Sequence record: NC_019408.1
DNA length: 64,000 nt
Direction: 5' to 3' (one strand)
In this document: positions 3,622 to 25,828 of the stretch, piece by piece
Layout: every line of letters begins with the position of its first letter
How positions within the stretch are numbered: position 1 is the stretch's first letter
Position numbers and translations under genes: made by a program
The notes under the pieces: generated by a model
Databases searched by the model: none
What the model saw: the letters and a program-made list of their open reading frames with translations, nothing else
Told to the model about the DNA's origin: nothing

Positions 3622-4254
3622 CTAGGCGCCCCTAAGAGGCTCGAAAGGCTGCTCGCTGGGGATGTAGAGGGGGTGGCGAGGATGCCCGCCTTTGGACTTG
3701 CCGAGGCACTTGACTTCGACCCCGGTGATTTCGGCTTGCTGGACCGCGCCATAGTCTTGATCCTTGAACTCCCCATGGACACCCCAGCCGGCGATGACGT
3801 CGGCCTTGGCGGTGACAGCGTACTCGAAAGCGTGTTGCAGGAAACGGGCGTTGAGTGGCCCGATCGGGTCGGGCGCGGCCTTCATGATCGCGGGCGACTT
3901 TGACCGGAAGGCGAAGAGGTTGACCACGATGATCCCGCCGTAGTCGTCGCGGCGCGCAAAGCCCATGCAGCGCCGGATGGTGTTGTCGTCGACTTGCGCG
4001 GTGGCGGTAGACGGATTGAGCATCATGAAGATCAGCAGCGGCTTGCTCGGGTCCCAGACCCGCATCAGCATGTAGCGGAAGGTCTCGCAGTCCGAGAGGA
4101 TCGCGGCCTTGATCACGCCGTCCTCGATCACCACGTCGCCATAGACGCCGGTGATCTCCGGATCGTCGATCGACAGTTCGGCGGTCCCGTCCTCCAGGAC
4201 CCGCAGGAAGTCGCCCCAGGAGGGCGCGCTCAGTTGTGCGGTGATCGTCGTCAT
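3622..4254 (-). CDS. DUF1643 family protein
   Basis: FRYML.RVWD..KP...FMMLNPSTA...DDNTIRRC..FA...VVNLFAFRS..P; AGWG; HPRHPLY. Confidence 0.85.
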   Translation of the reverse strand: MTTITAQLSAPSWGDFLRVLEDGTAELSIDDPEITGVYGDVVIEDGVIKAAILSDCETFRYMLMRVWDPSKPLLIFMMLNPSTATAQVDDNTIRRCMGFARRDDYGGIIVVNLFAFRSKSPAIMKAAPDPIGPLNARFLQHAFEYAVTAKADVIAGWGVHGEFKDQDYGAVQQAEITGVEVKCLGKSKGGHPRHPLYIPSEQPFEPLRGA

Positions 4255-4261
4255 TCCTGAC

Positions 4262-4295
4262 ATTTGCCCCGAGACGGCCGGCTTTGTCAACGCTT
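4262..4295 (-). promoter_or_regulatory. sigma70-type promoter, class AGCGTTGACAAAGCCGG; possibly leaderless
   Basis: TTGACA 4290-4285, 17 nt, GCAAAT; ATG 8 nt downstream with no spaced SD. Confidence 0.5.
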
Positions 4296-4300
4296 GGAAT

Positions 4301-4330
4301 CAAAAGGGCCGCCCCGCAGGACGGCCCTTT
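4301..4330 (-). terminator. intrinsic terminator
   Basis: AAAGGGCCG-loop-CGGCCCTTTTG hairpin plus U tract on minus strand. Confidence 0.75.
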
Positions 4331-4523
4331 CTCGACCTTACCAGACTTCGCCGAGTATGCACGTCCGCCTGGACGTCGACCGCCTCGGAGTCTGGTCTTG
4401 TAGCGCCTCTAACGCTTGCCCCTCCGCACCCCGATCAAGGAAACCAGAAATCGGGTCGGATGGTCTAATGGGCGGCAGGTGATCGCTGGCGGTCTCTTCC
4501 GTGTAGGGCCTCCTACCACTTGC
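4301..4523 (-). ncRNA. putative structured non-coding RNA, family unknown
   Basis: ORF-free interval between a TTGACG-N17-TAGAAC promoter and a terminator; several long stems (ACCAGACU/AGUCUGGU, CCGAG/CUCGG, ACGUCC/GGACGU, CCCGAU/AUCGGG, GUAGG/CCUAC); no AUG on this strand. Confidence 0.6.
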
Positions 4524-4529
4524 GGCTCT

Positions 4530-4558
4530 GTTCTAGGATCGCGGCGCTACGTCGTCAA
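4530..4558 (-). promoter_or_regulatory. sigma70-type promoter for the putative ncRNA
   Basis: TTGACG 4558-4553, 17 nt, TAGAAC 4535-4530; same -10 as the repeated phage promoters. Confidence 0.55.
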
Positions 4559-4811
4559 CCTCAAGCAGGGCCTTTTGAGCCAGGGCGCGGTTGTACTCCA
4601 GGAGCTTGCGAAGAGCCTTGCGGTCTCCTTCAGCCATGGCGTAGAGCCGCACCACGTCGTCGAAGTCGAACTCGTTGACGAGGTCGCGTAGGTCCTGGTC
4701 CATCCTGTCGATGGTCCGAAACAGGCGCTCGCGGTACTGGCGGCGCTCACGCTGGCGGCGGCGGGCGACGAGGGTGCCGATCCGCTGCCGCACGCGACGA
4801 TGGCGCAGCAT
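4533..4811 (-). CDS. hypothetical protein, basic N-terminus
   Basis: ORF in operon, overlaps upstream stop. Confidence 0.6.
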   Translation of the reverse strand: MLRHRRVRQRIGTLVARRRQRERRQYRERLFRTIDRMDQDLRDLVNEFDFDDVVRLYAMAEGDRKALRKLLEYNRALAQKALLEVDDVAPRS

Positions 4812-6606: not shown

Positions 6607-7064
6607 TGGCAGACCTTCACGGGGTCGACGGCCGCGACCGGCGACATGTAGGTGTCGGGGTCCCAGGCGCCGGGGACGTTGCCGCCCTCGATGTACTGGT
6701 AGTCCGGCGACGGCGGCCTCATCGAGCCGCCGTTGCTGGCGACCTTGCCCGGATTGGGATAGGCCGATAGCCACAGGCGCCCGTCGGTGCCGCGCAGGAC
6801 AAATTGCCCGCTCTGGCGGCAGACCTTGGCGATCTGCATCCGCCATGCGTAGTTGAGCTTGCGCTTCTTGGCGGCCTCGTCGCGCAGCCACTGCTCATGG
6901 CCCATCCGCGCCCACCGAGCCCTCTTGGCGACGAGGGCCTTGTGCTCGGGCGACCAGCGCAGGTTCTGCTCCTCGTCGAACGACACCGACACCGTCACCA
7001 GCAAGAGGAGGACCAGGACACCAAGCACCGGGAGCCAGAAGAGCGGATCACGCAGGCGAGACAT
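6603..7064 (-). CDS. membrane-anchored hypothetical protein
   Basis: N-terminal hydrophobic helix LFWLPVLGVLVLLLLVTVSV. Confidence 0.65.
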   Translation of the reverse strand: MSRLRDPLFWLPVLGVLVLLLLVTVSVSFDEEQNLRWSPEHKALVAKRARWARMGHEQWLRDEAAKKRKLNYAWRMQIAKVCRQSGQFVLRGTDGRLWLSAYPNPGKVASNGGSMRPPSPDYQYIEGGNVPGAWDPDTYMSPVAAVDPVKVCQ

Positions 7065-8521
7065 CAGGCGGGCTCGTCGACGAAGGCGTAGTCGCCGGTG
7101 TCGTAGCCGGCCGCCACGCGCTCGCGGACTTGATCCAGGGTCGTCGGCTCCAGCACCTTGCCGGTGTTGAAGACCTCGTCGAGCAGGTCGTGCTCAACCA
7201 CGTCGCCTTCGTGGACCGTGATGGTCTCGAAGCCGCCATGCTCGTTGGTCACGAGCGCCAGCTTGCCCTTCTTGGACACCTTGCCCGGATCGGTGATCGG
7301 GTCCTTGAAGATGTCGACCCACTCGCCGTTGATCTCCTGGGCCGACGACTTCATCGCCCACTTGTTGGTGTCGCGGTCGAGGTCGCCCGTCGCCAGACCA
7401 CCGCCGGCCGCCGTCATGATGCTGTCGGGCGCGATGCCCAGGTCCCGGCCCAGGTAGAACGGGTCCATGTGGGTGTGCTCGTTCATGCCGTCGCCCTGGA
7501 GGACCTTGACGTTCATGTTGATGACGTCCAGGCCCTTGCTGTTGCGCTGGGTGCCGAACCCGTCCGCCAGGGTCTTGAGGACCGGCGGGATCACCTCGCC
7601 CAGGCGCCCGCTGTCGGGGCGGCAGACGATGGTCAGGTTCTTGTTGGCGATCAGGTCCTTGTACTTCACGAGCTTCTTGGCGAACTCGAAGATGTTCCAG
7701 GTGTCGCCGACCAGCGAGACGATCGAGCCCACCGGCGCGCGCGTCAGGCAGTGCAGGATGTACTCGTCGTCGTTGTCGCGCCCGAACGAGCACGAGATCG
7801 AGTGCTCGGTGGCCAGCACCGAATAGGCCGACATCTCGCTGAAGTAGTTGATGTTCGCCGCGCGCACGCCGGGCACGTTGTCCGAGCCCTGGAAGTGGAA
7901 GAGGTGAGCGATGCCGGCCAGGACCGAATGGTCATAGCCCATGGTGCCGCGCGAGGAGAAGTCCAGGAAGGCGAACGGCGACATCGGGGTGTCGCTGGTC
8001 AGTTCCCAGAAAATCTTGATCGACTGGGCGATCTTGTTGACGCGGGCGGCGATCGTCGAGGCCGTCCAGACATCGCGCAGGATCATGGTCTCGAAGTACG
8101 AGGTCAGCCAGGGCAGGCGCGGGTCGAGGTTCTCGACGCTGATCAGCGCGTTCTTGACCGGGATCATCATGCCCTCGGGCACGGCCTTGATCCGCAGCGG
8201 CAGGTAGCCGCCGTACTCGTTCAGGATGATCTCCCAGCCGTCACGGTTGAACGGCAGGCCATGGGCCGGCACGAACGCGGCCATCTCTTCGATGTCGGCG
8301 CGGGTGATCGGCTTGCAGAGCTTCTGGAAGAGCAGGCGCTGGAACGCGGCCAGCATCACCTTGGGGTAACGCCCGCCCCGGCTCTCGATGTAGCTGTAGA
8401 CGGTGGTGCAGCCGTCGCGATAGAGCACCCAGTGACCCAGCTTGTAGCTGTCGGTGTCGGCGATCAGGTTGTAGGTCTCGACGGGGGCGACCCCGTCCCA
8501 GTTGGCGATGTCGAAGGCCAT
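7064..8521 (-). CDS. nadV: nicotinamide phosphoribosyltransferase (NAMPT)
   Basis: DTDSYKLGH, DFSSRG, ATEHS, RPDSG, QGDG, KDPITDPGKVSKKG motifs. Confidence 0.92.
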   Translation of the reverse strand: MAFDIANWDGVAPVETYNLIADTDSYKLGHWVLYRDGCTTVYSYIESRGGRYPKVMLAAFQRLLFQKLCKPITRADIEEMAAFVPAHGLPFNRDGWEIILNEYGGYLPLRIKAVPEGMMIPVKNALISVENLDPRLPWLTSYFETMILRDVWTASTIAARVNKIAQSIKIFWELTSDTPMSPFAFLDFSSRGTMGYDHSVLAGIAHLFHFQGSDNVPGVRAANINYFSEMSAYSVLATEHSISCSFGRDNDDEYILHCLTRAPVGSIVSLVGDTWNIFEFAKKLVKYKDLIANKNLTIVCRPDSGRLGEVIPPVLKTLADGFGTQRNSKGLDVINMNVKVLQGDGMNEHTHMDPFYLGRDLGIAPDSIMTAAGGGLATGDLDRDTNKWAMKSSAQEINGEWVDIFKDPITDPGKVSKKGKLALVTNEHGGFETITVHEGDVVEHDLLDEVFNTGKVLEPTTLDQVRERVAAGYDTGDYAFVDEPA

Positions 8522-24425: not shown

Positions 24426-25828
24426 TTTACGCCGACCGAGGCTGCGACCTTGGTGAGGGACTCGCGCTGGGCCTTGATGCGTTTGTCGAAGGCGTCGAGC
24501 GTCGACATCATCTCGGCCTCCAGCTTGTCCAGCGCCGCCCACTGCTCGACGACCGCCTTGGCGGCCTTGTCCTGGGCCTCGTTGCGTTCTGGGCCGTAGA
24601 CCCGCTCGCGCAGTTCGGCGATCCAGGCGCGCGGCAGGCCCAGTTCCTTGGAGACCTTCTCGTCGGTCATGTCGCCGCCATAGCACTGGCGGTTGGTATC
24701 GTAGTGGGTGTCCAGGGCTTCGAGGATACGGCGGTTCTCGGCCGGCGTCGCCGCGCGCGGCGGCTCGGCGGACTGGGGCAGGGTCTTGGCGGCGGCTGGG
24801 GGCATGGCGATCTCCGGAATAGGGGTTTCGATATGGGTTTCGATGGTGGTCGGATTGTTCTTCTTGGCCAGCCGCGTCTTGGCGGCGGCCTTCTGGCGCT
24901 CGGAGCGTTCTTCCTGGGTCATGGCGGCCCAGTAGGCGCGCGGGCCGCGCCCCTTCTTTTCACGCTGCTCGGCGATCTTGGCTTCCCGCTTGGCCTTGCG
25001 CGTGGCGTGGCCCTTCTTGGCGAGTTCCGACCGTTGCTCGGGCGTCAGGGATTCGTGGTGGGCGCGCAGATGCGCCCCATCGAAGAGCTTGCGCCGATCG
25101 ACCTTGGCGTCGACGCCTTGTTCCTTGCTCACGATGGCGTAGGCCTCCTCGAAAATGGGATTGAGGAACTTGTCGGACGCGTAGTGGACGATCTCCTCGG
25201 GCAGCACGTCATCCTGGGTGCTCAGTTCCTGGATCACCCGGCGGATCGACGCCAGGAGAGGAGCCGTGGGCGCTTCAAGTCCACACTCGCGGAAGAACTT
25301 GCCGGCGTAATTCGTGAGGACGACCTTGATCCGCTGCTCGCGCGGGTAGCCGCCCGTCGTCTTGCGGATGGCGCCCCGGACGATCCTGTCGGCCGTGTCG
25401 GGATCGATCTCCGCCACGGTGGCCAGCATCTTGCCCACGGCCTCGTCTTCGAGGACGAAGTCACCCGCCTCGCGCGGGTCGATCATCTCGATCGGCTTGA
25501 TCGCGTTGGACACGACCTGGATCGCCGTGTCGATGGCGATGTCGTCGCGGTCGGCGACCGGGGCGGAGTCCTGCTTGGCGCGGCCGTGGCAGGACGGGCA
25601 GGTGTCCTTGTTGCGGTTGGCGCCGACGGCCCAGCCCCGCTTACGGAATATCTTCGAGGCCAGTTCCGCCGGGATGTGCGGGCTGCGCGTCGTCACCGGG
25701 ACGGCGTCATCGCGGTCGCACTTGCGGCAGACGGCCACGACGTGGTTCTGGCGCTTGTTGGGGTCGGTGGCCAGGGGACGCATCTCGACCCGGAACGACT
25801 CGCGCGTGGCAAGTTTGGTCGTGCTCAT
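24416..25828 (-). CDS. multidomain putative DNA-binding protein
   Basis: N-terminal CRKC...CPSC, basic T(P/Q)E(Q/E)RSE repeats, C-terminal HTH-like DEKVSKELGLPRAWIAELRE. Confidence 0.7.
   Translation of the reverse strand: MSTTKLATRESFRVEMRPLATDPNKRQNHVVAVCRKCDRDDAVPVTTRSPHIPAELASKIFRKRGWAVGANRNKDTCPSCHGRAKQDSAPVADRDDIAIDTAIQVVSNAIKPIEMIDPREAGDFVLEDEAVGKMLATVAEIDPDTADRIVRGAIRKTTGGYPREQRIKVVLTNYAGKFFRECGLEAPTAPLLASIRRVIQELSTQDDVLPEEIVHYASDKFLNPIFEEAYAIVSKEQGVDAKVDRRKLFDGAHLRAHHESLTPEQRSELAKKGHATRKAKREAKIAEQREKKGRGPRAYWAAMTQEERSERQKAAAKTRLAKKNNPTTIETHIETPIPEIAMPPAAAKTLPQSAEPPRAATPAENRRILEALDTHYDTNRQCYGGDMTDEKVSKELGLPRAWIAELRERVYGPERNEAQDKAAKAVVEQWAALDKLEAEMMSTLDAFDKRIKAQRESLTKVAASVGVKLA

Follow-up and report, generated by a model that had tools for sequence, protein, structure and literature searches.

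An unannotated gap of 279 nucleotides (nt) in the genome of Caulobacter phage CcrRogue carries, on the minus strand, a member of a family of structured RNAs with a double-pseudoknot fold, a family that we regard as almost certainly real. The gap lies between gp278 (open reading frame (ORF) 4533-4811) and gp279 in the window, that is the whole 64-kb stretch of DNA that was analysed, which is 100% identical to the record of this 224-kb phiCbK-like siphophage (NC_019408) and has a G+C content of 66%. Taken as a whole, our observations are best explained by an autonomous, trans-acting folded phage RNA with a putative binding or catalytic core, a reading to which we assign a probability of about 0.5. 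An earlier inspection of the bare letters (hereafter the original prediction) had proposed at this place a stand-alone structured noncoding RNA of about 220 nt, and every sequence string that it described is indeed present on the minus strand.

A conserved double-pseudoknot core

The conserved core extends from the 5' strand of a first pseudoknot (PK1) to the 3' strand of a second one (PK2), at 4494-4331 on the minus strand, and comprises the stems P2, P3 and P4/P4b in addition to the two pseudoknots. PK1 is formed between a 5' segment and the loop of the long bulged helix P4/P4b, PK2 between the loop of the short helix P2 and the 3' tail, and P3 is a small hairpin with an invariant loop in between. 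The model of this family (R1) and its seed alignment comprise 32 compact metagenomic members without any Caulobacter-phage sequence, and R1 finds 4338-4421 (minus strand) with an E-value of about 1e-10 as its sole match in the window, no second copy being present. RNAalifold applied to the 32-member alignment returned four nested helices de novo (PK2, P3, P4 and P4b), in which 17 of 23 pairs were compensated. When 88 distinct sequences were aligned to the model, 98.0% of the cells were paired and changes on both sides were observed in 18 of the 23 pairs; the covariation score reached 0.560, as compared to 0.180 ± 0.007 for shuffled controls (0/500 reached the native value) and 0.04-0.09 when the pairing partners were slid. 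The eight Caulobacter phages retain all 48 modelled pairs (100% paired), eight of them through compensatory double changes, and half of these compensated pairs (4/8) belong to P4, the outer stem of a helix named H3 in the original prediction. Covariation of the stems in relatives and a scan of Rfam were among the checks that this prediction had proposed: the first proved strong and the second returned no known family.

The individual helices could be followed through the family. The 5' strand of PK1, GACCGCC (4494-4488), pairs with GGCGGUC (4384-4378) directly after P4b. The sequence of PK1 differs in almost every lineage, as in BL57 where the compensatory change GACCACC/GGUGGUC is found, and its length ranges from 7 to 14 bp; it nevertheless keeps a constant place, in that the 5' strand mostly ends 6-10 nt before an invariant CCUGC block and the 3' strand mostly starts 0-2 nt after P4b. 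Across the family, native pairings between the 5' segment and the loop score 23.4 versus 14.6 ± 3.3 for cross-sequence pairings, and 40 out of 62 exceed the 95th percentile. In alignment A4, which fits PK1 as a helix and leans towards structure, 85% of the PK1 cells are paired and 8/8 pairs change on both sides, and slid controls drop to about 35-54% paired. PK2 joins UUAGACC (4468-4462) to GGUCGAG (4337-4331), with six base pairs in CcrRogue including one U.G wobble, plus one A.G mismatch; all six family pairs covary and the phiCbK group is compensated relative to CcrRogue (GAUC/GAUC).

The CCUGC block (4479-4475) is invariant in the 32-sequence seed and nearly so in 87 sequences. The UGC of this block is able to form P2a with GCA at 4419-4417, but as it never varies, covariation neither supports nor refutes this pairing. 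The P2b 5' strand, CCC at 4472-4470, precedes the PK2 5' strand and the 3' strands of P2 occupy 4422-4417; P2b is 100% paired, and at its last pair the Caulobacter phages have C-G, most other members G-C and one member A-U. The P3 hairpin (4416-4402, with a 5-nt loop) is 99.8% paired in the 88 sequences, one of its pairs being C-G (68) or U-A (19), and an invariant U.G closes the loop. The junction ACAAG (4401-4397) leads into the 5' strands of P4 (4396-4389) and P4b (4388-4385), whose partners at 4347-4340 and 4354-4351 are separated by the bulge CGA (4350-4348) and followed by the junction AA (4339-4338); 7/8 pairs of P4 and 4/4 pairs of P4b change on both sides. In CcrRogue, H3 thus consists of ACCAGACU/AGUCUGGU (P4), CCGA/UCGG (P4b) and an inner hairpin ACGUCC-AGGC-GGACGU (4376-4361) situated in the P4b loop, which varies in length and sequence across the family.

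With linkers near zero, PK1 and PK2 are both classical H-type pseudoknots, and PK1 should therefore stack on P4b/P4 and PK2 on P2/P3. The seed alignment contains 35 invariant columns, which are mostly junction residues, and variation is greatest in the single-stranded loops of the RNA. We rejected an antisense small RNA (sRNA) on this distribution, since conservation sits in the junctions of the pseudoknotted core; the working part would be the folded core and not an antisense seed.

G.U wobbles, among them the invariant U.G, account for about 9.5% of the paired cells in the 88 sequences; read from the opposite strand or within a cruciform of DNA, they would be mismatches. A DNA-level element, such as a replication origin, a packaging site or a recombination site, might be suggested by the location of terminase genes 0.5-2.4 kb from the RNA in one group of contigs and of DNA polymerase genes nearby in another. 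We consider it highly improbable, however, since the frequent wobbles are strand-specific, the orientation of the RNA always follows that of the flanking ORFs and a pseudoknot topology would be meaningless in duplex DNA.

The minimum-free-energy fold of the CcrRogue sequence recovers helix H2 of the original prediction, the small hairpin, H3 and the end hairpin. The sequence folds only modestly better than shuffled versions (z = -2.17, with 3/200 shuffles equal), so that CcrRogue by itself would not be convincing.

At gathering thresholds, none of the 4,227 models of Rfam 15, riboswitches, ribozymes and sRNAs included, matched the whole 64-kb window. With the region 4150-4700 and E ≤ 10, only fragments of terminator hairpins were reported (ryfA 3' end, STnc320 and RNAI), and the compact relatives L010, L015, L024, L139 and L166 returned only noise. 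The locus is neither a tRNA nor a transfer-messenger RNA according to ARAGORN. The proposal of a structured noncoding RNA that is no tRNA, riboswitch or ribozyme of a known type is thereby borne out. The sole tRNA of the window, tRNA-Ala (anticodon UGC), lies at 25330-25403 on the plus strand, opposite to that of the RNA.

Lineage-specific insertions in the Caulobacter phages

The region is conserved in every phiCbK-like Caulobacter phage matched, with identities to CcrRogue of 88% in CcrBL10, about 79% over part of the region in BL57 and about 74% in phiCbK, Swift, Karma, Magneto and Ccr2/5/10/29/32/34. Two Brevundimonas jumbo phages do not have the RNA in their syntenic region. Comparison of these relatives divides the four-module fold of the original prediction into parts of different standing. 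The basal part of H2, which corresponds to the UGC(C)/(G)GCA pairing, the small hairpin and H3 belong to the conserved core; H1 and distal H2 are restricted to particular lineages, and the double pseudoknot had been missed. H1, the 5' leader hairpin GUAGG-AGGC-CCUAC (4516-4503), is confined to CcrRogue and CcrBL10, the phiCbK-type phages having another hairpin and BL57 none that aligns. Distal H2 is a stem-loop inserted in the P2 loop (4460-4423), which is missing from the compact metagenomic members and replaced by different self-complementary sequences in CcrBL10, BL57 and phiCbK. Unrelated hairpins likewise occupy the position of the inner H3 hairpin in BL57 and phiCbK. Judging from these alignments, distal H2 and the inner H3 hairpin are Caulobacter-phage insertions in loops that tolerate them.

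Two further proposals did not survive the comparison with the 88%-identical CcrBL10. The AGGC loop common to two hairpins has already disappeared in this phage, and so has the pairing of ACCAGA with UCUGGU that had been put forward as a switch or pseudoknot; the conserved pseudoknots are GACCGCC/GGCGGUC and UUAGACC/GGUCGAG.

A large family in viral metagenomes

Further members were sought with a short and degenerate motif pattern spanning the small hairpin and its flanks. This pattern matched 34 IMG/VR contigs and gave at least 120 matches in JGI metagenomes, which together correspond to at least 113 distinct cores after deduplication. By sample name they originate from soil, rhizosphere and freshwater, with G+C contents between 45% and 69%. 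The same pattern returned 0 matches in 185,579 species-representative bacterial and archaeal genomes; with a looser two-gap pattern, a single one among the 120 matches listed passed a crude P3/P4 pairing filter, and it resembled coding DNA. Among 50,697 cultured phage records searched by blastn, with two divergent family members among the queries, only the phiCbK-like Caulobacter phages matched.

The metagenomic carrier contigs are about 40-60 kb long and encode a family-A DNA polymerase whose identity to the enzymes of cultured phages does not exceed 41%, as well as, in one contig, an Sf6-type small terminase recognized through a single weak match (31% identity). These sequence comparisons show no relationship of the metagenomic carriers to phiCbK. 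The RNA family is thus a large one and, as judged against Rfam 15, previously uncatalogued; a large collection of 8,495 unnamed viral RNA candidates has also been published (PMC10690425).

Candidate transcription signals of the CcrRogue RNA

The original prediction had placed a promoter in the 3' end of the upstream gene. The -35-like box UUGACG (4558-4553) and, after 17 nt, UAGAAC (4535-4530) are found inside or overlapping the 3' end of ORF 4533-4811, the stop codon of which is UAG 4535-4533. The Caulobacter RpoD -35/-10 consensus is quoted in PMC8144410, where a gap range of 10-19 nt is used. UUGACGA, the -35 box with its following base, agrees with this consensus at 6/7 positions, and the -10-like box CCUAGAAC (4537-4530), which overlaps the stop codon, agrees at 6/7 specified positions and starts 14 nt after the 7-mer -35; the candidate promoter of the RNA therefore possesses consensus boxes with a gap inside this range. 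It is followed by an AUG-free stretch from about 4523 to 4302 (222 nt), which ends with the terminator-like hairpin AAAGGGCCGUCC-UGCG-GGGCGGCCCUUU at 4330-4303 and then U. This element (4330-4302) abuts PK2; its hairpin and U run are conserved in relatives, and its 12 bp are 100% paired in the eight Caulobacter phages. The counterpart of 4523-4302 in phiCbK is located at about 125.33-125.56 kb of JX100813.1.

The -35-like box is invariant in these eight phages, whereas the spacer diverges and the coding context changes. In CcrRogue the box lies inside codons of gp278, in CcrBL10 over the stop codon of the gp278 homologue, and in the phiCbK-type phages and BL57 at the end of an unrelated gene. 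The latter is an extra small gene of the gp262 family inserted between the gp278 homologue and the RNA (L003:1203-1436 in the phiCbK type and L005:1171-1380 in BL57, 48% identical to each other), which CcrRogue and CcrBL10 do not have. An unchanged -35 box behind different upstream genes therefore indicates that this box is linked to the RNA rather than to any gene.

A second promoter-like element is found 3' of the terminator-like hairpin at 4290-4260. It consists of UUGACA (4290-4285) and a conserved block (4270-4260), and its boxes are invariant in the eight phages with a spacer that varies. The block ends about 5 nt before the AUG (4254) of gp279, a DUF1643 protein gene extending to 3622 on the minus strand, and leaves no usable ribosome-binding spacing. 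This arrangement suggests that the DUF1643 gene has its own promoter and possibly a leaderless mRNA. Since this putative promoter follows the terminator-like hairpin, the RNA unit would be insulated from the downstream gene.

We infer both the promoter and the terminator of the CcrRogue RNA from sequence. The invariance of the -35 box and the conservation of the end hairpin with its U run make the proposed stand-alone unit plausible in this phage, and on these signals a separate transcript is predicted as probable. A promoter of the Caulobacter RpoD type, located in the end of the upstream gene, would drive a separate transcript about 220 nt long, this transcript would end at a hairpin and U run stacked directly on PK2, and another promoter would then serve the DUF1643 gene.

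In the CcrSwift record, the site homologous to the end hairpin is annotated as a predicted rho-independent terminator on the other strand. The hairpin 4303-4330 is flanked by an upstream A run and a downstream U run and could terminate transcription from either direction.

Genomic context of the family and alternative roles

All-against-all clustering of the ORFs within ±6 kb of the 88 loci, only 16 of which have at least 2 kb on both sides, revealed no neighbour or partner gene that is conserved. The leading clusters consisted of spurious frames lying over the RNA itself, and the largest genuine neighbour families were present at 8-9 of the 88 loci in varying positions. A second stand-alone arrangement was found in contig L248, from an unrelated phage, which carries two divergent tandem copies on the minus strand (446-591 and 649-829), each with a hairpin and U run. 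A -35/-10-like pair is located between the copies and another one after the second hairpin, and no ORF separates the copies; in the upstream copy, the P3 loop holds a long insertion comparable to those of the Caulobacter phages. L248 thus seems to follow the same promoter-RNA-terminator cassette logic as CcrRogue. In the family at large, a hairpin and U run immediately follow PK2 in about 11 out of 62 members, and the terminator stems start 0-3 nt after PK2 with at most one base in common (CcrRogue, L010, L034, L116, L142, L212, L238 and L248). A TTGAC box is present 56-84 nt upstream of the invariant block in 10/61 members as compared to about 2 estimated by chance, the lineages not being independent. 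A generic sigma-70 search upstream of family members was uninformative (3 found versus 2.1 expected).

An autonomous RNA is favoured because of the stand-alone cassettes, the tandem copies, the missing gene association and terminators that do not compete with the fold. Such an RNA would act on its own, probably in trans, by binding a cellular partner that is conserved and could be a protein or a small ligand; binding of a conserved partner in trans is a putative step that we put forward tentatively, at somewhat less than even odds.

Several observations weigh against this interpretation. With a generic sigma-70 and terminator scanner, no promoter and no terminator are called for the CcrRogue RNA. 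Its -10 box departs from the E. coli pattern, and of the UUUU that follows the 12-bp end hairpin three pair with the upstream A run and are taken up by the stem, where the scanner's rule asks for at least 5 U after it. Most family members are wedged between two ORFs of the same strand, the upstream stop codon lying at a median of 4 nt before PK1, and a ribosome-binding site (RBS) with a start codon is present in 25/52 loci at 16-35 nt after PK2 (median 33 nt). Because the RNA there lies within polycistronic mRNA, a cis or processing role fits these intercistronic members as well as a trans role. Finally, the phiCbK-type phages possess a strong RBS (AAGGAGG, four nt before an AUG) that opens a 67-codon frame across the RNA.

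This last frame has been annotated across the RNA and its terminator as a 67-amino-acid hypothetical protein in phiCbK (gp263, L003:1499-1702), CcrSwift, CcrKarma and CcrMagneto (L002, L006 and L007). Apart from the initiation signals of the phiCbK group, the locus does not behave as a small protein gene. The frame is closed or shifted in CcrRogue, CcrBL10 and BL57; the spacing of the conserved blocks (57/55/51/52 nt and 39/37/40/38 nt) shifts by other than multiples of three; the frame runs through the terminator-like end hairpin; 3 out of 4 substitutions within the phiCbK group are non-synonymous; and the metagenomic members have no ORF over the RNA. We find a small protein gene hardly credible and conclude that the coding annotation is very probably a mis-annotation, a result that corrects the hypothetical protein entry in several GenBank and RefSeq phage records.

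Tight intercistronic packing keeps a processing ribozyme, or another cis role, under consideration. The core would in this case be a self-cleaving or self-processing ribozyme cutting the polycistronic transcript between cistrons, a cleavage predicted by analogy only. Its mostly intercistronic position and the lack of gene association are compatible with such an activity, and the resemblance to hepatitis delta virus (HDV)-like and glmS ribozymes extends to the crossing order of the long-range helices (5' segment with internal loop, internal segment with 3' tail), which from general knowledge is that of nested double-pseudoknot ribozymes, to invariant junction nucleotides amid freely varying helices, and to the tolerance of peripheral insertions of variable length, among them a variable hairpin after the 3' strand of the first pseudoknot. 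However, no Rfam ribozyme model matched even at E ≤ 10, stand-alone promoter-RNA-terminator units such as those of CcrRogue and L248 make little sense for mRNA processing, and HDV-like and glmS folds do not have the extra helices that here enclose the PK2 strand (P2) and the PK1 strand (P4/P4b). We consider a processing ribozyme unlikely. An HDV-like ribozyme proper, a nested double pseudoknot with only P1-P4 and P1.1, was rejected on the same fold and on the absence of an Rfam match.

The frequent position directly upstream of an ORF with an RBS could also point to a cis-acting regulator, either a riboswitch that responds to a global metabolite or signal, or an antiterminator RNA that modifies the transcribing polymerase so that terminators are read through. 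The downstream genes have early or middle functions (primase-helicase, exonuclease and phosphoesterase), a terminator follows some members, and the family, whose domain is conserved and covarying, has pseudoknots, a size and a degree of junction conservation similar to those of pseudoknotted riboswitch aptamers. Those downstream genes are nevertheless unrelated to one another and form no coherent set or conserved class. Where terminators are present they abut PK2 without overlap, with no mutually exclusive helix evident and hence no competing expression platform, and a putative fresh promoter after the terminator in CcrRogue and L248 would make control by read-through redundant. The put RNA of phage HK022, a cis-acting antiterminator, consists of two simple stem-loops. 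Some family members resemble it in being phage-encoded, promoter-proximal structured RNAs upstream of terminators, but they form a double pseudoknot, have a terminator without spacer and, in CcrRogue and L248, a putative new promoter thereafter. For cassette members, a riboswitch or antiterminator is thus argued against by the same four observations that favour an autonomous RNA, the tandem L248 copies without an intervening ORF among them, and over the whole family we judge a cis regulator about as improbable as a processing ribozyme.

A passive role, as an mRNA stabiliser or an exonuclease-resistant element of the untranslated region protecting the neighbouring cistrons, would account for an RNA that starts a few nt after the upstream stop codon, is often followed by a terminator hairpin and is knotted with both ends paired, in the manner generally known of nuclease-resistant viral RNAs. 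A simple barrier, however, needs no set of about 35 invariant and mostly junction nucleotides shared across unrelated phages, nor tandem stand-alone copies, and this role appears very doubtful.

Neighbouring genes and other elements

The original prediction had situated the RNA inside a repair/anti-defence gene block, a setting that we could not confirm since most neighbours have no assignable function. The DUF1643 protein has no relative in the PDB by sequence and most other neighbours of the RNA in CcrRogue have no Pfam match. Elsewhere on the minus strand of the window, the protein encoded at 1247-1708 shows a weak SLOG-family (YAcAr) match and 7064-8521 is annotated in the record as nicotinamide phosphoribosyltransferase.

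In the metagenomic carriers, the large-terminase gene L015:1090-3648 (minus strand) contains Hint/intein domains after its nuclease domain. Sub-threshold matches to the alphaproteobacterial mmgR/suhB sRNA family (28-29 bits as compared to a gathering threshold of 41) were observed about 1 kb upstream of the RNA at L010:1919-1982 and L015:7403-7454, both on the minus strand, and feature a C/U-rich single-stranded stretch and a terminator. They may represent a second phage-borne sRNA and provide a hint of alphaproteobacterial hosts.

Relation to known RNAs and significance

The family resembles other orphan structured RNAs (GOLLD, ROOL, HEARO, raiA-type and the PMC10690425 candidates), which are likewise defined by covariation, abundant in phage or metagenome sequence, devoid of a consistent gene neighbour and of unknown function at discovery. 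It differs from them by a distinct double-pseudoknot fold and by matching no model of Rfam 15, and with a core of about 140 nt it is much smaller than GOLLD or ROOL. With 6S RNA, CsrB-type and Y RNA-like RNAs it shares the stand-alone cassette, in CcrRogue and L248, and a function presumed to reside in the fold and not in an antisense seed; it has no sequence or structure in common with them and most of its members are embedded in operons.

RNA families combining a complex fold, strong covariation and invariant junctions have repeatedly proved to be riboswitches, ribozymes or ribonucleoprotein scaffolds. The present one is common to phages that share nothing else and is abundant in viral sequence from soil, rhizosphere and freshwater. 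We give clearly less than even odds to the possibility of a new functional class, which could be a novel self-cleaving ribozyme or else an aptamer with which the phage, during infection, captures a conserved protein of its host or a small molecule of signalling or metabolism. The phiCbK-type Caulobacter phages are a classic laboratory system that carries this RNA, so that its expression and structure can be examined at once, and an infection time course of phiCbK by RNA sequencing exists (PMC10688885). If the RNA did represent such a new class, experiments on it could start from phiCbK, a cultured model phage, and from its relatives.

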